Shown in pieces: positions 3,969-50,559 of a stretch of 64,000 nucleotides of DNA. A program made the translations under genes and the position numbers. Every line of letters begins with the position of its first letter. Position 1 is the stretch's first letter. The notes under the pieces are model-generated. The model was given only the letters and a program-made list of their open reading frames with translations. It ran no database searches and was not told the origin of the DNA. Where the stretch lies: sequence record PQ227241.1. One strand, written 5' to 3'.

Positions 3969-4628
<660 letters not shown>

Positions 4629-5179: not shown

Positions 5180-5599
5180 TTACTCCTGTACATCCGTCAT
5201 TACACGTCCTTCGATAGACCAGTATAATTCATTTTCTAATGAATCATAAACCGTTCTATATTCACATGCCTCACCTTTGTTTAATTGACAGTCAACTTTG
5301 AATACACGGTTACCAACTAAACAATTACCATAAGCACGAATCACCAATAATCCATTTGTCTTATTGGCAATAGTAAATACATATTTACCTTTTTTAGTAT
5401 CATAGGCAGTAGCTGGTAAATTTACTATAAATGGACTATCTGAATTATCATTATCAGTATAATTAGGATCTTCAACGATAATGTGCGCATTAAGATAAGT
5501 TGAGTCAATATCAAACTTACGTCCAGTTGCTTTAGACGTGTCAATTACTTTCATAGGTGGGTAGATATAACAGAATTCGCTCATGATTGCATCCACCAT
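5180..5599 (-). CDS. Hypothetical protein resembling fibre C-terminal domains (start possibly 5584)
   Basis: 139 aa. The NLP.......G.Y.F.I.N motif resembles the C-terminal domain of the upstream 314-aa gene. Confidence 0.55.
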   Translation of the reverse strand: MVDAIMSEFCYIYPPMKVIDTSKATGRKFDIDSTYLNAHIIVEDPNYTDNDNSDSPFIVNLPATAYDTKKGKYVFTIANKTNGLLVIRAYGNCLVGNRVFKVDCQLNKGEACEYRTVYDSLENELYWSIEGRVMTDVQE

Positions 5600-15967: not shown

Positions 15968-16035
15968 GCTGTTTTAAGCTATAATTACTACATTGGTATA
16001 GATAATATAAAAAGTGTCTTAAACGACGAAATAAA

Positions 16036-16055
16036 GCCCTCCCCGAAGGGAGGGC
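16036..16055 (-). terminator. Intrinsic terminator with UUCG loop
   Basis: GCCCTCCC-TTCG-GGGAGGGC-TTTATTT on the minus strand after gp146. The 25-nt core is identical to 48201..48225. Confidence 0.9.
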
Positions 16056-16066
16056 AATATGTCGTT

Positions 16067-19000
16067 TTAAATAACAGCACCTTTGGAAACTACCCAATTA
16101 GTACCGTCCCATAGGAGAGTAAGAATTGTTTTAGTATCGCCTAGGTCATCTACTATTAATGGAGTACCATTGTTCCACTGTAGCACTGCACTAGATAGTG
16201 TTGGCATAGCTACCTTACCAAGTAGTACAAGAACAGCCGTTACCATACGATCAACAGGTCCATTCTCTAGTGTAATGGTTTGGTTAGCAGCAGTTTGAAC
16301 CCTATAGCACTGTTGGTTAGCTGGTGTTAGAGTTAAAGCTGTACCAGTGAATGTACTTGATTTCAGACTATATACATCGAATGATTTATCTAGCTTCTTC
16401 CAAGTAATATTAGTACCAGTACGGCTACGTACCCAATCACCATCAGCGGTTACATCATTATTCGGACCTTGGAATAGAGTCCATGATTTAGCCGCAGCGT
16501 TACGTAGGAATAGTTGTCCACTAGTAGCATCAGCTTGATCAACTATAATAGTTACAGGTGTCCATTTAGAACCACTAGCTGTTTTCTCACGTACATAGTT
16601 AGTGCCATTAGCACCTTCACTAGGTACTTCACCAATAACTGCGGCTGGTACAGCTACCCATTCACCATTTTGCATACCCATTAGAGTATCATCGGTTTGC
16701 AGAGGTGCTACATCAACCCAGTTACCAGCTACACGACCTTGAGGCTTAGTAGCTTGTGCAGTATCACGTACTACATCCGCAGGAATCTCAGGGAATGTAA
16801 TGGTAGCCCATTCAGTTTCACCCCCTGCAATACCTTTACGAACGTATTGTGCATTAACAACTGGACTAGGTACAGCATCAATGGCAGGTGTTGGTAATTC
16901 AATAGCAGTCCATTCAACAGCCCCGTCAGCGGTTGCTTTACGGCGACCATAGAAGACACCTACTTCAGCATCTACCACCTCATCAACAGGTAGTTCAGTC
17001 CAACCGAGTTTGTACCGAACCATTTTCTTATCGACATCTTCTGGATCGACTTCACTAACTGGAACGGACATTAGTTTGTAGAATACAACCCAGTTAGCAT
17101 CTTTATACCAGACAGTGCCAGTTTTGTCGATACACCAGTCACCACGATTACCATCGATAGATGTAGGTGCAGTTTGACCTTCAGGTAGAATTACCCAAGA
17201 GGATCCACGTTCACCTTTCTGACCGGTTTTACCAGGCATACCTGGAACACCTTGCTTGCCCTCAGGACCTTCAGGACCCTGCGGACCCATAGCTAGGACA
17301 CCTAGGCTTTCCCAAGTAAATGTACCTTCAGTATCGATACTTACAAATACTTCTACTTGTCCTTTAGTATTGGTGCGAATGGCAATACCTTTACCTACGT
17401 TATCAGCAGATGCTACTGGTTTACCAGCATCATCACCAACATAGATAATTAATAGACCACCACCTTGTTTACCTTCAGGACCTTGTGGGCCTTCGACACC
17501 CTGGATACCCTGCTCACCATTTAGATTAATTGGGCCGATATAGCCATCAATTTCCTGACCTTGGTAAGTATAGAGCATTGTACCTTCGTTAGTTTCAACC
17601 CAGTATGAATCACCAGTTACTAAGTCAGGATCAGTGTCTTTCTTTGGTAGTTGTGAAGCATCGGTTAAAACACCTTTAATGTTTAAACCTTCACCCGGTT
17701 TACCTTGCGGACCTGCCATAATACCAATGCTAGTCCAGCGACTACCGTCCATGTTAACAAATACTTCGCCCGTGGACTTAACAGTATATGCTTTCCATTG
17801 GTTATCGGCAAGTGCTTCTGGTGGGGTATCTTCAGGAGTGTCAATCGCTGCGATGATCTGGATAGGTTCACCAGCGGGACCTTGTGGGCCTTCTGGTCCC
17901 TCGGGTCCTTCTGGTCCCTGATCACCGTCTTTACCAGGTGCGCCATCTTCACCTTTAGGACCTCGATGTGTACCACTATTTACCCAATTACCATCTATCT
18001 TAACAAATAAGGTAGATGTGTCTTGTGTGAAGTACGCTGCCTGATCAGGAGCATCTGCCGGCAGGGCTGCCTCATTGGCAACAGCACCAGTAATAACTAC
18101 GTTCTTACCATGTAGACTGATTAACCATTCACCCTCAGTACCAGTGAAGCCATTGTCCAATGCTACTTGGAAAGCCGATTTACCTTGTGCCCCTGGTTCA
18201 CCAGGTAGACCTTGTTCGCCATCTTCACCTTGCGGACCTTCAGGGCCCTGCGGGCCACGGAATGAACCCATGGCTGTCCATGAGATATCAACAGTCGGAT
18301 CTTGGCCAGTCAGTACATAAACCGTATTGGTGGAACGTACTGAAACACCTTGGTATTGTTCTACACCAGTGGTGGTTAATAGATCATCAGCAGTTTCAAC
18401 TGCTTTAACTACTTCTAAGTTACGACCTTGTGGACCAGGTTCACCTTGTTTACCATCGGGACCCGGATCACCTGTATTACCTGGTTTACCTTGTGGGCCC
18501 TCAGGGCCTTGGAAAGTACCTAGGTCTGACCATGCCCCTTTTACAAAGATGAATAGATGTTCTGGTTTACCAGCTTCCATAGTAACTAAGTATGCTTCTG
18601 ATTCTTTAGCTACAGATGGATCAGGTAAATCAGCTGGTGATGGTAGTGAATCCTTAATGGTAAACGGCATTGCTGGTTCACCCTGAGGACCTTCAGGACC
18701 AATTTCACCATCTTTACCTTGCGGACCCTCAGGGCCCTCAGGTCCACGTTCACCCTGTGGTGTAACTGGGAACCAATCATAGTCATCAATAGTTGGATTC
18801 TCTGGCGGATTATTACCTGAGATAAGCATCCACGCCCAGAGTTGATTATTCCATGAATAAGCATCTCCAGGTTTATTACTTTCAGTCTTAGGTAATTCTA
18901 AGTTATTAGGCCAACGACCACGGATAACTAGACCAGTACCATCTGGACCACGAAGTGAACCTGTTTCAACCCAACGACCTTTTACAGGGGGGTCTTCATT

Positions 19001-19348
19001 ACCTAGCGGTGATTCCCACACCCATAGCCGATCTTCAACGAACCAAGCATCACCGACATTATGCGTATCTAATGGTTTAATATCTTGTTCGAATGTTGCT
19101 AGATCAACATTAGCGATAATGTTAATAGCCGGACCAACTGGGCCAGGAGGGCCTTGTTCGCCATCTTTACCCGGCTGACCATCTTCACCCTTTAATCCAG
19201 GTATAGTAACAGGATCAACGAAAGTAGTATTAAGACCCACCCCGGTAGAAACCGGGATGTGTCCATTAACTACAGAAGTGGGCTCATCAATTGATGATAC
19301 CCGTTTGGGGAGTTCCCCGTTTACATAATCTTCAAATGCAGAAGCCAT
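16067..19348 (-). CDS. gp146: Collagen-like fibre protein
   Basis: 1093 aa with many Gly-X-Y runs (GPEGPEGPQG) alternating with roughly 60-aa Trp-containing modules, and a C-terminal beta domain. Confidence 0.85.
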   Translation of the reverse strand: MASAFEDYVNGELPKRVSSIDEPTSVVNGHIPVSTGVGLNTTFVDPVTIPGLKGEDGQPGKDGEQGPPGPVGPAINIIANVDLATFEQDIKPLDTHNVGDAWFVEDRLWVWESPLGNEDPPVKGRWVETGSLRGPDGTGLVIRGRWPNNLELPKTESNKPGDAYSWNNQLWAWMLISGNNPPENPTIDDYDWFPVTPQGERGPEGPEGPQGKDGEIGPEGPQGEPAMPFTIKDSLPSPADLPDPSVAKESEAYLVTMEAGKPEHLFIFVKGAWSDLGTFQGPEGPQGKPGNTGDPGPDGKQGEPGPQGRNLEVVKAVETADDLLTTTGVEQYQGVSVRSTNTVYVLTGQDPTVDISWTAMGSFRGPQGPEGPQGEDGEQGLPGEPGAQGKSAFQVALDNGFTGTEGEWLISLHGKNVVITGAVANEAALPADAPDQAAYFTQDTSTLFVKIDGNWVNSGTHRGPKGEDGAPGKDGDQGPEGPEGPEGPQGPAGEPIQIIAAIDTPEDTPPEALADNQWKAYTVKSTGEVFVNMDGSRWTSIGIMAGPQGKPGEGLNIKGVLTDASQLPKKDTDPDLVTGDSYWVETNEGTMLYTYQGQEIDGYIGPINLNGEQGIQGVEGPQGPEGKQGGGLLIIYVGDDAGKPVASADNVGKGIAIRTNTKGQVEVFVSIDTEGTFTWESLGVLAMGPQGPEGPEGKQGVPGMPGKTGQKGERGSSWVILPEGQTAPTSIDGNRGDWCIDKTGTVWYKDANWVVFYKLMSVPVSEVDPEDVDKKMVRYKLGWTELPVDEVVDAEVGVFYGRRKATADGAVEWTAIELPTPAIDAVPSPVVNAQYVRKGIAGGETEWATITFPEIPADVVRDTAQATKPQGRVAGNWVDVAPLQTDDTLMGMQNGEWVAVPAAVIGEVPSEGANGTNYVREKTASGSKWTPVTIIVDQADATSGQLFLRNAAAKSWTLFQGPNNDVTADGDWVRSRTGTNITWKKLDKSFDVYSLKSSTFTGTALTLTPANQQCYRVQTAANQTITLENGPVDRMVTAVLVLLGKVAMPTLSSAVLQWNNGTPLIVDDLGDTKTILTLLWDGTNWVVSKGAVI

Positions 19349-21558
19349 TATACTACTTCCTCAAGTTCGATTTTCATCAGTCCAGTGGTGTTGGACACAG
19401 CGTTTGCTGAGTCACAGTTATACCACTTATTGCCATCCTTGATGGTGTAGGTGTCAACTTGATTTGCATCATCCGCCTTATAAGTGAAGTTTAAGCTACC
19501 AGTAGAACCTTTAGATAGGTTACTGCAACGTAGTTTACCAGTATTGGTTACTTCAGTACCAATATCAGTTTCACGGTTCGGCCAAGCAGCCACACTTAGA
19601 GTGCGGAATACAAATCCACCTAGTACATAAGTACCACCATTTACACTATTAGCTTCAACACCAGCTAAACCTTTTAGAACCACACTGTTAAAATCGTAGG
19701 TTCCTTTAGGATCATCGTCATGTACTAGTAATGCACGTGTCCATACCTTACCAGTGGCATCAGATTTCCAATCCTCAGTAGCCCACTTACCGCCAGGCGC
19801 ATTCATGGCCGGAGCTGCACTTAGTTTCTGAGTAGAGGTTAAAGTAATGACATGACTTTGTACTTGGGTTCCAAAGTTACCACCTGAACGAAGGCGAGCA
19901 GCAGGGTAGGTAACCGTCGCAGTAGGTGCCGCATTTGCAATAGCCACAACAGCAATAGCTGTAGCTACACTACCATTAGCTGCACGTTTAGCAGTAATTA
20001 ATAGGTTATTAGTGCTGTCGTTATAAGTACCTGACTTATAAGTAACTACCTTAGCAATTTCTGCTTCATTTGCACTGGTTATAGTAAGCTGATCATTTGG
20101 TGAGGAATAAACCACACTATCAGCATTAGATACCGTATTGGCTACAGTAGCAGTTTCACCTACTTTAATAGCACTTTGACCAGACGGATAAGTTACTTGA
20201 CCAATATTAACAACTGGGCGAAGATCGTTTAACTGCATAGTGTTAATTTTATCTTCGGAACCAGCATCACTGGAAGTAAACCATTCTGACCATGATCCAG
20301 TTGATTTCTGAACACGTACACGGAAACCATATGCCTTAGTAGTATTACCACGATCAGCTACATAAAGACCAGTAACCTCTAGTTCTTTAGTAGGTGCAAC
20401 AGTACCACTACTTTCTTTCAGTGCACCAAAGTCAGCAATTTCGTATGCTACTATATTTTCATCAGTAACAACTTTAATTGCAACAAGGTCATCTTCTTTA
20501 AGTTCTGTTTGACCTAACGGATAACCGCCAGTAAATACAGCACTAGTAATATTAGCGGGAGTATCGGCTAATACCTTAGTAGTGAATTTAGCCCCATCGG
20601 CGTGTTCTACAACAATATCAGCATAACCTTCAGTAGTGGGTGCACCAAGATCAATATCGGCAGTAGCAATCCACATAGGTGGATTAACGCCAGGAGTTAC
20701 AACTGCATCTATGTTATTGATTTTAACACTAGGTACATAACTAGAATGTCCAGTTATTGCATCAACGATAACTCGAACATTACTAGTAGTTGATAGGCAT
20801 GACTGTACGCTGTGCCCATCGGGGGTACGCACAATACTACCTACGTTCTGACTGGGGTCAGTTGCTTGTACATCTTTGACGAATACACCGCCACTAATAC
20901 CTTCATTTTTAGGAAGGTTCTTAAGATCAACGGTCGTTTCATCAACGCCTTCAACAATACGGATATTACCGTCATTCTTGAATGCAATGTAATCAGTTAA
21001 ACTACCAATCTGGAATTCACCATTGTCATAAATACGAATTTCAGACTCAGGTAATTCGGGTAATGCACCTTGCGTAGTGGGCGCAGAAGCGTTCTTTAGA
21101 TAAGAATAACCTTCTGCTTCCATACGACCTTGTTCCATCATACGCTGAGGTATTTTATCACCAGCAGTTAAGTCGTCTTGATTTAGACGCTTATCAAACA
21201 GGAAAGCAAAGTTATGGAAAGCAGCGTTGGATGATAATCCACCATTCTTGCCAGTTACACGCAGTACATCTTTAACTGTGTAACCTTGTTGATTTAAGAG
21301 CGACTGGAGTAGTTCAGCAGTCATGGTTGCATGCAGTGATGTTAACCATTCCTGTTCAGTACCTTGGAAACCATTTTTAACGGCAATCTCGTACGCACTA
21401 AGACCGGGTGCTCCAGTCTGTAGTTTTGACAGCAGAAACTTATAGTTATCGACTTGACCAGCTGCATCGGTATGAATTAATTCAATATACTCGCTATCGT
21501 TAAGAGTAGCTAGATCCGGCAGTTGACTGATCTTGCCTTTGTCTGTAACATTTGCCAT
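19348..21558 (-). CDS. gp145: Virion fibre-associated structural protein with Ig-like beta repeats
   Basis: 736 aa with an N-terminal KISQLP domain and a G.SAY.IA..NGF.GTE.EWL.SL module also found in gp146. Coupled to gp146 by a TAATG overlap. Confidence 0.75.
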   Translation of the reverse strand: MANVTDKGKISQLPDLATLNDSEYIELIHTDAAGQVDNYKFLLSKLQTGAPGLSAYEIAVKNGFQGTEQEWLTSLHATMTAELLQSLLNQQGYTVKDVLRVTGKNGGLSSNAAFHNFAFLFDKRLNQDDLTAGDKIPQRMMEQGRMEAEGYSYLKNASAPTTQGALPELPESEIRIYDNGEFQIGSLTDYIAFKNDGNIRIVEGVDETTVDLKNLPKNEGISGGVFVKDVQATDPSQNVGSIVRTPDGHSVQSCLSTTSNVRVIVDAITGHSSYVPSVKINNIDAVVTPGVNPPMWIATADIDLGAPTTEGYADIVVEHADGAKFTTKVLADTPANITSAVFTGGYPLGQTELKEDDLVAIKVVTDENIVAYEIADFGALKESSGTVAPTKELEVTGLYVADRGNTTKAYGFRVRVQKSTGSWSEWFTSSDAGSEDKINTMQLNDLRPVVNIGQVTYPSGQSAIKVGETATVANTVSNADSVVYSSPNDQLTITSANEAEIAKVVTYKSGTYNDSTNNLLITAKRAANGSVATAIAVVAIANAAPTATVTYPAARLRSGGNFGTQVQSHVITLTSTQKLSAAPAMNAPGGKWATEDWKSDATGKVWTRALLVHDDDPKGTYDFNSVVLKGLAGVEANSVNGGTYVLGGFVFRTLSVAAWPNRETDIGTEVTNTGKLRCSNLSKGSTGSLNFTYKADDANQVDTYTIKDGNKWYNCDSANAVSNTTGLMKIELEEVV

Positions 21559-21763: not shown

Positions 21764-22585
<822 letters not shown>

Positions 22586-22607: not shown

Positions 22608-23141
22608 TTAACTTTCTAGATAACGGATTTGACCATTTTCTAGATAACGTGCTGCACCATTCTCTAATAGTCGGATAGTATCTGACGTATCATCAATACG
22701 TTGAATTAGTATATTACATTCACCATAGTAAGCATAACTACTCGACATAGCTACTATCGTGTATGGAACAATATCCGTAGTTGCATTGATTGGTGTTGTA
22801 TCGAATGAAATATCATCTGGTCCAAGCTTCCAACCTCGTGAACGGTTAATTTCTTCAGCAATCGCTTTAGGTGTTAAAGTACCAACTATCTTAAGGATAG
22901 ATCCTTCACCAATAGCTCGTGGATCAGCAAAATCTAACCGACGGTAAGTTAACATGTACTTAATGTCAGTAGTAATGTCGATCATTTCAATAAATGTACG
23001 TCCAGGCTCAATCGTGGTTGGACTAAAAAACATATCTTCAAATGTAACTGTTTCTGGTTTGAAGTTTATTTTTAAATCATCCCGCGCAAGTTTTACTAGC
23101 GCATTCCTCGATGCCATGTCATACGGAAAGATATCCTGCAT
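22608..23141 (-). CDS. gp143: Virion structural protein with C-terminal RxLE(N)G triple repeat
   Basis: 177 aa with an RTFIEM...YRRLDF family motif. Ends IRLLENGAARYLENGQIRYLES. Confidence 0.7.
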   Translation of the reverse strand: MQDIFPYDMASRNALVKLARDDLKINFKPETVTFEDMFFSPTTIEPGRTFIEMIDITTDIKYMLTYRRLDFADPRAIGEGSILKIVGTLTPKAIAEEINRSRGWKLGPDDISFDTTPINATTDIVPYTIVAMSSSYAYYGECNILIQRIDDTSDTIRLLENGAARYLENGQIRYLES

Positions 23142-48179: not shown

Positions 48180-48205
48180 CTTTTTTTAATGTAATACAAC
48201 ATAAA

Positions 48206-48225
48206 GCCCTCCCCGAAGGGAGGGC
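48206..48225 (-). terminator. Major capsid gene terminator with UUCG loop
   Basis: GCCCTCCC-TTCG-GGGAGGGC-TTTATGTTG. It lies 9 nt after the second in-frame stop (48235), about 90 nt after the annotated UGA. Confidence 0.9.
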
Positions 48226-48234
48226 CTATGTCTG

Positions 48235-48315
48235 TTACTCTTCTAACTTCCGGGCATTACCGTCTTCCAAATAACGGATAGTCCCATTTTCTAGATAACG
48301 GTAACCCTTTCCAGC
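48235..48315 (-). other. In-frame 26-codon extension of the major capsid ORF beyond UGA (putative readthrough domain)
   Basis: After CCG-TGA the same frame reads AGKGYRYLENGTIRYLEDGNARKLEE-TAA, which matches the gp143 C-terminus. Confidence 0.75.
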
Positions 48316-50559
48316 TCACGGCTTAAGATCAGCAAGCTTACCGTTGAACTGAGTTTCGCCCATGACTTTCTGGAAGCCAGTGATCTTGAACTCTAGTGCG
48401 AACGGAATGTTGTTGACGTGTAGGTTGAACGGAATGGCCGCGATTTCGCGAGTAACCTGGTGACCACCACGGGTGATCGGTAGGTCAGCGATAACAGTAG
48501 ATACGTAGAAGAACTGACCCCAGGAGAGGATGTCGTTTTCTTGTTGTACTGCGCGGGTCGGAATTACAACTAGCTTACCATCGAATAGCTGGTTGTTGGT
48601 GGAAACGATATCGTACTTGAGATAAGCACCTAGAGTACGGTCGTCACCTTTAGTCATTAGATAGTTAGCAATCTCTTTGTCGGAGCAGAAGAGATACATC
48701 GGAGTTTCATCCTGGTTACCGGAGATAACACGGAAGGCAGCTTCAATGTTGGAATCACGGTGAGCCGGGAATAGCTCAGCTTTAACACAGTTTAGGATCG
48801 CAGCGCAAACGTCGTCCCAACGATCTTTAGACTTGATGGTGTCGATGACTTTCTCAAGATCTAGTTCTTTGTAACGATAGGTCGGACGCATTACAGCGGA
48901 TAGTGCACCTTCGATGATACCAAACTTCGGACGGTTGTAACCATTGTGTACAACTTCACGTAGTTGAGCAAGGTAGTTAAGCATGCGCTTAACAGCGTTG
49001 TTGCTGTTACGGATGTTGGTGTTAACGGTTAGAGCTTTAACAACCTCACCCGGACCTTCATCGGTCATGGTGTCCATCGGTAGAGTTACAGGAGCGTGCA
49101 TCGGGATCGGATGACGGAACTGTAGTGCACGGGTCTGTAGTAGGTGACCACGCTGACGACGGTTGGTGTTGGTGAAGCGAGTATCTAGTTCGAAACCGAT
49201 AACAGCTAGGTCAATTAGCTGATCTAGAATAGCTTTAACAGCCGGGTCAGCATTATCCATTACTTGACCATCTTCGTTTAGAACTTTATCGACGTAAGTG
49301 TCGGTAGCACCAAACTTAGAATCGCCTTTGGATAGGCTGATAGTACCGCCGAAACCAACGCTTAGACGTAGGCTTAGTTTAGCAGTCTTAAGGTCGTTAA
49401 TAACGCCATCAGCTGAACCGTCGATGAAAGTGGTATCGCCACTAACAACAAGGTCATCGCTATCGAAACGGATAACTGCGTTCCGGGTATCACCAACTAG
49501 ATCGGGCTGGAACACAGCGCGAGGTAGACGGTCAACCTTGAACTTAACAACTTTACCGCCGAGTAGAACGAATAGGTTCTTTAGACGACCAGCCGGATCA
49601 ATGGTGTCAGAAACTTCAAGCATGCCACGCTGAATGAGTAGGTTAGCATTGGAGTTACCCATTAGATCAAGACGTACGTTCGCTTTTAGCGGAGCAGTAG
49701 TGATAGTTAGGTTCTGCTCGTTCTTGATGGTGTACGGAGGAACAAGAGCCGGGTCTACGAAGAAGTCAGCATTGGAACCAGCCGGATCTAGGGCAGGAAT
49801 TAGTGCAATGCTTTCGTCGTCGAGGATGGAAGGATCACGATAGGCTTCTACCATGTTCACTTCTTCGTTATCCATCTTAACGCCGGATACTTCGTGGTAA
49901 ACGTCTTTCATTACAGCGATGTAAGGAAGAACCTGAACAACACCACCTTCAATCGGGTTGATAACGGTGGTCGGATAGATACGCTCAGCGAATTCATCCT
50001 GACGGCTAGCAGCTAGGTTATAACCAATAGTTACAACACGGAAATCACGCTGTGACTTCTCGTTATAGTTCTCTAGGCCAACACCATTTTCGAATACTTG
50101 AATGCCACCAGCAGGGCCATTGAACTGATGCTGTACAACCTTAACATGATCTTCATTAGAAGCTTTAGCTTTGGTAATACCACGTAGTGCACGGATATAT
50201 TTAGTTTCATCAGCACAGGCGATAGCAGCCATGGTAGCAGCAGTGATTTGGTTCTCACGGACACGTTCTTCACGAGCACGTACTTGAGGATCACTGGAAC
50301 TTACTCGTTCGAAACCATAGTCGTTAACGAGCATTTGCATTTTGTTATAAATTGCAGCGGCATCTTGAATGTCGGTAGCTTGCACGGTACCGAAGTTTTC
50401 ATGTGAAATGCTGCTAATAAGGGAACGACCTTGACTAACAACGCTGTCATTTAGACCAATTTCACTTTCTAGGCGGCCAATGAAATCTTCCATTGAGAAG
50501 ACTTCGTAATTCTTTTCGCCTTTGTGTTTAAACAGTTCTCTTAGGGCATGTACGCTCAT
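48316..50559 (-). CDS. gp120: Major capsid protein
   Basis: 747 aa, with propeptide cleavage site GLE163 and GC-richer, highly-expressed-type codon usage. Recognised as phiKZ gp120. Confidence 0.95.
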   Translation of the reverse strand: MSVHALRELFKHKGEKNYEVFSMEDFIGRLESEIGLNDSVVSQGRSLISSISHENFGTVQATDIQDAAAIYNKMQMLVNDYGFERVSSSDPQVRAREERVRENQITAATMAAIACADETKYIRALRGITKAKASNEDHVKVVQHQFNGPAGGIQVFENGVGLENYNEKSQRDFRVVTIGYNLAASRQDEFAERIYPTTVINPIEGGVVQVLPYIAVMKDVYHEVSGVKMDNEEVNMVEAYRDPSILDDESIALIPALDPAGSNADFFVDPALVPPYTIKNEQNLTITTAPLKANVRLDLMGNSNANLLIQRGMLEVSDTIDPAGRLKNLFVLLGGKVVKFKVDRLPRAVFQPDLVGDTRNAVIRFDSDDLVVSGDTTFIDGSADGVINDLKTAKLSLRLSVGFGGTISLSKGDSKFGATDTYVDKVLNEDGQVMDNADPAVKAILDQLIDLAVIGFELDTRFTNTNRRQRGHLLQTRALQFRHPIPMHAPVTLPMDTMTDEGPGEVVKALTVNTNIRNSNNAVKRMLNYLAQLREVVHNGYNRPKFGIIEGALSAVMRPTYRYKELDLEKVIDTIKSKDRWDDVCAAILNCVKAELFPAHRDSNIEAAFRVISGNQDETPMYLFCSDKEIANYLMTKGDDRTLGAYLKYDIVSTNNQLFDGKLVVIPTRAVQQENDILSWGQFFYVSTVIADLPITRGGHQVTREIAAIPFNLHVNNIPFALEFKITGFQKVMGETQFNGKLADLKP

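Follow-up and report, generated by a model that had tools for sequence, protein, structure and literature searches.

Why should the short peptide repeat that ends one phage protein, gp143, be encoded again in frame behind the stop codon of the major capsid gene? The question arises from a window of 64,000 nt (the whole stretch of DNA analysed) in sequence record PQ227241.1. The window is from a phiKZ-type Pseudomonas jumbo phage: both loci are 99-100% identical to Pseudomonas phages PA7, KTN4 and phiKZ and have their genes on the minus strand, so that phiKZ gene names apply. The answer that we favour, at a probability of roughly 0.5, is that the repeat serves as a portable socket for the KISxLP plug of gp145-type fibres, and that this socket is carried by gp143 and by a few readthrough copies of the major capsid protein (MCP).

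The repeat unit is R-x-L-E-x-G-x-x, found three times in tandem over 20 residues with a period of eight. The gp143 gene (22608..23141, minus strand; 177 aa, from the ORF and its translation) encodes a DUF7941-type globular core followed by the C-terminal tag RLLENGAA-RYLENGQI-RYLES (residues 157-177, 22611..22673, minus strand), so that the chain reads RLLENGAARYLENGQIRYLES and then stops. The MCP, gp120 (48316..50559, minus strand; 747 aa), ends ...LADLKP at a TGA. Its frame beyond the TGA reads AGKGYRYLENGTIRYLEDGNARKLEE and then TAA, with codons at 48238..48315. This extension, AGKGY-RYLENGTI-RYLEDGNA-RKLEE, has 26 codons plus its own TAA stop (48235..48315, minus strand), and its triple repeat, RYLENGTIRYLEDGNARKLE, was placed at 48241..48300 (minus strand) by motif scan and comparison with the gp143 tail. 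The initial annotation had noticed the triple repeat in both places and had seen the motif nowhere else in the translated ORFs. Both observations are confirmed. The translations agree, the repeat is conserved at each locus, and when all six frames of the window are scanned, R.LE[ND]G appears only at the gp143 end and in frame after the MCP stop (four matches, against 0.06 expected from shuffles; the tandem eight-residue form likewise gives four against 0.07). The 17-nt block CCATTTTCTAGATAACG reported as common to the two loci is also real (22633..22649 and 48284..48300, no strand assigned). It is weak evidence alone, because it merely encodes RYLENG in identical codons and the window holds ten direct exact repeats of at least 17 nt.

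In gp143 the tag is an old and constant feature. R157, E160, R165, E168 and R173 are invariant in 44 members of the family, at identities down to 31%, and every C-terminus among the orthologues of eight genera and 40 database relatives is the triple repeat. The protein matches phrog_2935 (E 3e-46). The phiKZ-type gp143 matches PF25613 (DUF7941) weakly, at 18.7 bits against a gathering cut-off of 27, and related family members reach 32-36 bits or have a precomputed PF25613 assignment. An AlphaFold2 (AF2) model gives pLDDT 89 for the core and 67-81 for the tail, which as a single chain shows isolated beta-bridges, one per eight residues. The sole significant Foldseek match of gp143 in the PDB is 9xqd_0 (E 1.7e-6, TM 0.59/0.69), a chain of the phiKZ outer peripheral baseplate in which the N-terminal globular fold of gp143 is found. 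This match agrees with a preprint that places gp143, gp126 and gp127 among the DUF7941 proteins, and by the model the gp143 core is a DUF7941 fold. That fold allows another account of the tag, as a DUF7941 head-to-tail linker that docks on the N-terminal domain of gp126, gp127 or gp143, with the capsid extension seeding or binding the proposed DUF7941 filament cloud. Inspection of the gp126 and gp127 sequences shows no such repeat, however, and the tag is common in phages whose carriers lack a DUF7941 match, while the DUF7941 family is reported to be confined to chimalliviruses. We consider the linker account improbable.

A second account starts from what has been published on gp143. The protein lies inside the lysis cassette and is a cytoplasmic regulator of the holin gp142 that shifts holin triggering time (PMC12894885). 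It is non-essential: transposon data show that it is dispensable for plaques (PMC12894885; bioRxiv 10.1101/2025.11.23.690004). The tag could then serve lysis regulation: the holin, a chaperone or a protease, for instance, might grip gp143 by it, and tagged capsid protein would be a competitor for that factor, linking lysis timing to head production. The effect on triggering time, the position in the cassette and the dispensability for plaque formation all suit this account. Against it, the published AF3 model puts the holin contact on gp143's first globular domain and leaves the tail uninvolved (PMC12894885), and in other phages the tag's carriers are proteins of the baseplate, tail and fibres that lie apart from lysis cassettes (see below). 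It seems to us very improbable. Against the socket model, the reported holin-regulator role has no obvious tie to fibre docking. The gp143 orthologue of 201phi2-1 is annotated as a virion protein identified by mass spectrometry. The main text of the phiKZ virion atlas is silent on both gp143 and gp145, as would be expected for flexible or sparse parts.

The capsid copy of the repeat raises the question whether it is translated at all. MCP loci were compared from 12 lineages (phiKZ, PS119XW, Phabio, 201phi2-1, Psa21, RVTF4, PhiPA3 and five IMG/VR contigs; at least seven genera), which are kin within one Pseudomonas-phage clade, and counts over them are not counts of independent events. Since a locus search with a single MCP sequence reached close relatives only, distant MCP loci were gathered one by one; the Noxifer MCP fell outside the region examined, and that genus is left out of the MCP post-stop count. 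The MCP stop is TGA in 12 of 12 lineages; in the window TGA is a minority stop, used by 9 of 55 ORFs (16%). Past the TGA, each of the 12 lineages keeps the frame open for 24-30 codons, which spell out the repeat, and then has a second stop, a terminator hairpin and TTTATG. The other two frames after the MCP stop are closed by stops. Length differences between extensions are of whole codons only.

Selection on the extension is specific to the MCP frame. Pooled over lineages, pN/pS is 0.54 in that frame (dN/dS about 0.32), against 0.87 and 1.02 when the same nucleotides are read in the shifted frames; for the last 30 MCP codons it is 0.36. The conserved Arg, Glu and Gly columns are each encoded by two to four synonymous codons, with switches between CGN and AGR for Arg and with all four codons in use for Gly.

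Two other routes to the peptide were considered and rejected. An independent start is contradicted by the lack of any in-frame ATG, GTG or TTG and of a start codon behind the purine-rich GGAAAGGG, and a suppressor tRNA encoded in the window by the lack of any tRNA gene there. This leaves readthrough as the only simple route to the extension peptide. The motif lies in the zero frame and not in the -1 or +1 frame of a frameshift-type extension, and the mechanism would therefore have to be stop-codon readthrough rather than frameshifting. As at the Q-beta A1 locus, a conserved TGA is followed by an in-frame ORF under protein-level selection.

The tag is absent after the MCP stop in the distant chimalliviruses examined (Goslar, RAY, RP12, FLC9, RTH11, JHP1101 and SA002). 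The MCP genes of Goslar (L111), FLC9 (L109) and RP12 (L113) do end in TGA and continue for 15-28 open in-frame codons without RxLExG, by chance or as some other extension. Most of the tagged lineages have an extra in-frame stop two to three codons past the extension stop (in the window at 48220..48237; also at L004, L005, L043, L103 and L106), and these look like back-up stops.

The RNA behind the stop is structured as well. A hairpin overlaps the extension (48250..48314, minus strand; MFE -29.6 kcal/mol, z -3.98), with a conserved core (48252..48307, minus strand) that begins 8 nt past the UGA and in which GGG..CCG pairs with CGG..CCC. It is long and imperfect, and its mean folding z over 11 lineages is about -2.4. 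Regions coding for the gp143 tail, which encode the same repeat, served as a control and gave a mean z of about -0.06, which ties the hairpin to the capsid locus and not to the peptide code. In the alignment 92% of cells are paired, against 38-60% with the partners slid, and eight double changes are seen where shuffles give 2.5. Several wobble positions in the extension are fixed although the encoded residues vary. An Rfam search at E <=10 returned no family for the hairpin beyond weak terminator-like matches. A stable, conserved structure thus stands a few nucleotides past the stop, as in readthrough driven by 3' structures, and by analogy the hairpin may stimulate readthrough.

These RNA features could instead mean that the post-stop region is conserved as RNA or DNA only, its likeness to gp143 being coincidental. 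The conserved hairpin and the terminator that overlap or follow the region, together with the fixed wobble positions, would agree with that. It leaves unexplained, however, why purifying selection should be specific to the MCP frame, with CGN/AGR switches, four Gly codons and whole-codon indels, and why the peptide period should equal that of an independently conserved protein tail. In a variant of this explanation the UGA and the hairpin direct the insertion of selenocysteine; bacterial selenocysteine insertion uses a UGA followed by a hairpin within the ORF, which is the layout seen here. The Rfam search matched no family and hence no selenocysteine insertion element, which may weigh against the variant. 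Of the explanations weighed here we give this one, in either form, the least credence. The open frame, its frame-specific purifying selection, the invariant UGA and the hairpin together make, at the level of sequence, a strong signature of programmed readthrough. The initial annotation had proposed capsomers tagged by readthrough, and what stands of this is that the invariant UGA, the selection and the downstream hairpin are, on the capsid copy, the hallmarks expected of a translated extension; that readthrough takes place, and at what rate, we infer from these same features.

Beyond the extension lies an intrinsic terminator hairpin (48201..48225, minus strand), of which eight of nine pairs covary over 11 lineages, with TTTATG next. 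The 25-nt terminator block, hairpin and T-run, recurs identically after gp146 (16031..16055) and after the MCP extension (48201..48225). TTTATG (in the window within 48186..48205, as is the block named next) stands directly 3' of the MCP terminator in every lineage, and slightly beyond it is an AT-rich block like TATATTAC. The two look like promoter elements for gp121. Such promoter-like elements after the MCP explain why a 601-nt query matched three to six places per phiKZ genome.

Whether a tail added to the MCP could reach a partner depends on where the C-terminus lies. The C-terminal arm has been modelled to its last residue, 747; in hexamers the six arms form a central helix bundle, and at pentons the arm touches the external protein gp244 (PMC11297242). 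The ordered arm, the bundle at the hexamer centre and the contact with gp244 make an outward-facing tail plausible, and the extension would then be exposed on the outside of the head.

The tag is not confined to phiKZ and its kin. A degenerate DNA pattern for it hit 88 IMG/VR stretches before low-complexity matches were removed; among those retained were many non-jumbo contigs as well as gp143 orthologues and another kind of case behind an MCP stop (L043). On the non-jumbo contigs, from uncultured phages, the tag lies at the very end, C- or N-terminal, of virion proteins that are unrelated to each other. The carriers include a P2 gpI-like baseplate protein (PF09684), a gpJ-like tail protein (PF13550), a glycoside-hydrolase protein, a protein encoded directly after the tape measure, and ORFs of 45-53 residues. 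Seven carriers have the tag at the N-terminus and one has it internally, and these N-terminal and internal tags are followed by Gly/Ala-rich linkers. Among 50,697 isolated phage genomes, a tblastn search with the tag of an uncultured phage found Pseudomonas chimalliviruses only, and the wider distribution therefore rests on the IMG/VR contigs. A scan of genome contigs gave at least three real matches (Blastomonas, Roseomonas and one internal case) among mostly low-complexity repeats of the RGLERGLE type. No Pfam family covers the tag, and sequence searches of the PDB with the extension peptide, gp143, a 32-sequence tag profile and the gp145 N-terminus returned nothing meaningful. By its distribution the tag is a widespread, uncurated terminal module of phages rather than a phiKZ-specific one.

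Most carriers with a C-terminal tag share the type of gene that follows. Of 13 such loci, 10 have a KISxLP-type start on the next gene; among 87 control loci (678 kb) there are 3 matches, weak at best and none of them beside a tag. These counts use a pattern that replaced a stricter two-part KIS regular expression, which proved too narrow. The KISxLP gene lies directly next, within tens of nucleotides, and its product begins M..K-I-S-(E/Q)-L.., then ..E-x-(I/V)-V-Q. Two of the three remaining C-terminal-tag loci show variants of this start. No Pfam family matched the KISxLP N-termini at E up to 10. In the literature accessible to search we found no account of the tag or of the KISxLP module, a query with the motif letters yielding only noise.

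In the window the one ORF with such a start is gp145 (19348..21558, minus strand), a fibre-like protein and the proposed partner, with N-terminus MANVTDKGKISQLP... and its KISxLP-type module, KISQLPDLATLNDSEYIELI, at 21475..21534 (minus strand). The gene order that had been described, with gp143 upstream of gp144, gp145 and the collagen-like gp146, is confirmed by the coordinates. Between gp143 and gp145 is gp144 (21764..22546, minus strand), a transglycosylase/endolysin with PF01471 (PG_binding_1) and PF01464 (SLT), which has been located at the neck whisker ring (PMC13250141). In chimalliviruses gp144 thus separates the tag gene from the plug gene, and the adjacency is looser than in the small phages. 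The module is present in the gp145 orthologues of six other genera (Phabio, PS119XW, 201phi2-1, PhiPA3, Noxifer and Viktualia), with a degenerate form in that of Psa21. After the endolysin gene PS119XW, Psa21 and PhiPA3 have two tandem KIS-type genes (positions 4484/5674 in L007, 4383/5611 in L008 and 4365/5200 in L010) and phiKZ has one. The next protein, gp146 (16067..19348, minus strand), is a collagen-like fibre protein with G-X-Y runs, a neighbour for which no specific link was found. At window position 19348 the start codon of gp146 overlaps with the stop codon of gp145, a hint that translation of these two fibre-like proteins is coupled.

Fibre docking had been suggested in the initial annotation with several possible partners. 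The neighbourhood counts (10 of 13 against 3 of 87) favour one of them, the KISQLP N-terminus of gp145; gp146 and gp131-135 found no support. Comparative genomics thus gives independent support to the idea of a docking code, in so far as gene neighbourhood pairs the tag with the N-terminus of gp145.

Two loci from bacterial genome contigs show other arrangements of the same parts. A Roseomonas indoligenes contig (L188, near nt 5491, minus strand) has a pair of successive ORFs that both finish in RLLE-type repeats, and after them a gene whose start, MSDSLIRNLPAAT, is a variant plug; the cluster is probably prophage or tailocin-like. In Blastomonas natatoria DSM 3183 (L055/L179) the order is reversed: a gene of the plug type, starting MVDQKITDLDPAT.., precedes the tag gene, which encodes a 439-residue protein with the triple repeat at its start.

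Carriers with N-terminal or internal tags have a KIS-type gene nearby in only three of ten cases, which leaves room for other partners of the tag or for a role that it fills by itself. The latter could be self-association: the tags of several chains would co-assemble into a small beta structure, gp143 and the extended MCP would bind each other, and gp143, tethered to heads, would be found in virions with no need of a fibre plug. The exact eight-residue period and the three copies suit in-register stacking, and the lone chain in the AF2 model forms isolated beta-bridges only. Tags joined by Gly/Ala-rich linkers resemble an autonomous unit, and the 201phi2-1 gp143 orthologue was identified in the virion by mass spectrometry, yet gp143 is absent from the main text of the atlas. 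What self-association does not explain is the regular KISxLP start of the gene after C-terminal carriers; moreover, a single copy per site is what one expects of some carriers, such as wedge proteins of the P2 gpI type and rare readthrough MCPs. It is the strongest rival, since a KISxLP neighbour is often missing where the tag is N-terminal or internal, and we hold it to be unlikely.

The docking mechanism that we favour would work as follows. The socket, (R-x-L-E-x-G-x-x)x3, would offer three tandem eight-residue units on one chain, and the plug, the N-terminal KISxLP...E-x-(I/V) module of a fibre-type protein (gp145 in phiKZ-like phages), would dock on it. Binding between the tag and the KISxLP module is suggested by their co-occurrence, and one tag may receive three chains. 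Display would be constitutive on gp143, a DUF7941-fold protein with paralogues at the outer baseplate, every copy bearing the socket at its C-terminus. On the head it would be sub-stoichiometric: the ribosome would occasionally read through the conserved UGA of the MCP, helped by the hairpin 8 nt downstream, and add the 26-residue tail. Out of 1620 MCP copies, a few capsomers per head would thereby have the same docking site as gp143.

Were this so, the few capsid sockets would hold sparse gp145 head fibres for a first contact with the cell or flagellum, and the lysis regulator gp143, bearing this socket too, would vie with tagged capsids for a single partner, coupling lysis timing to head assembly. 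The whole chain, from a phage-wide tag/KISxLP fibre code through hairpin-aided UGA readthrough and sparse gp145 head fibres to a competition with gp143 that couples lysis to head assembly, we regard as quite unlikely to be right in full.

The capsid locus would be the first conserved readthrough signal in a capsid gene of a tailed dsDNA phage, with a stop-spacer-hairpin layout otherwise known from eukaryotic viruses. No published report of an extended MCP or of readthrough in phiKZ-like capsid genes was found in the literature accessible to search. Readthrough peptides are absent from every protein database used in phiKZ proteomics, and existing data could therefore settle whether readthrough occurs. 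If the docking code holds, two short uncurated modules predict which virion proteins hold which fibres, and they would aid the annotation of "hypothetical" tail and baseplate genes in metagenomes. The model also proposes positions for gp143 and gp145 in the virion and offers a checkable cause of sparse, symmetry-breaking density on phiKZ heads.

Parts of this scheme have counterparts in known systems. The DUF7941 proteins (phiKZ gp126/gp127, Goslar gp22/gp23) share their fold with the gp143 core, as judged by Foldseek and the weak Pfam match. For the docking, the nearest parallels are adenovirus fibre with its penton base and P2 gpI/gpH, where a trimeric fibre docks by a short N-terminal motif on a capsid or baseplate protein and a symmetry mismatch is solved. 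One of the tag carriers found here is itself a P2 gpI-like protein. Neither system is related in sequence to ours, and the anchor proposed here would consist of three tandem eight-residue units on one chain.

Recoding at the 3' end of a capsid gene is likewise known in tailed dsDNA phages, from T7 10A/10B and from Listeria phage capsid and tail proteins, whose minor forms have a surface-exposed C-terminal extension. Those cases use ribosomal frameshifting (+1 in Listeria), whereas the phiKZ extension is in frame. The layout of stop, spacer of about 8 nt and stable conserved RNA structure is shared with eukaryotic viral readthrough, such as gammaretrovirus gag-pol. The eukaryotic signals act on eukaryotic ribosomes and release factors, and a stimulatory role of the phiKZ hairpin is suggested by the shared layout. 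We know of no bacterial precedent for a stop-spacer-structure readthrough signal.

The closest likeness in expression is to the A1 protein of Q-beta (Leviviricetes), whose coat gene ends in a leaky UGA and in this way yields, as proposed here, a C-terminally extended minor capsid protein. A1 is present in few copies per particle; the extended phiKZ MCP is deduced from its gene. The two differ in scale, Q-beta being a small ssRNA phage with a folded extension of about 200 residues and phiKZ a 280-kb dsDNA jumbo phage with a 26-residue tag, and the phiKZ-type capsid locus, unlike Q-beta, has a conserved hairpin 8 nt after the stop. Since the frameshift layout is not what we find, the expression logic of the phiKZ-type capsid gene is, by this analogy, that of Q-beta A1 and not that of T7 10B.
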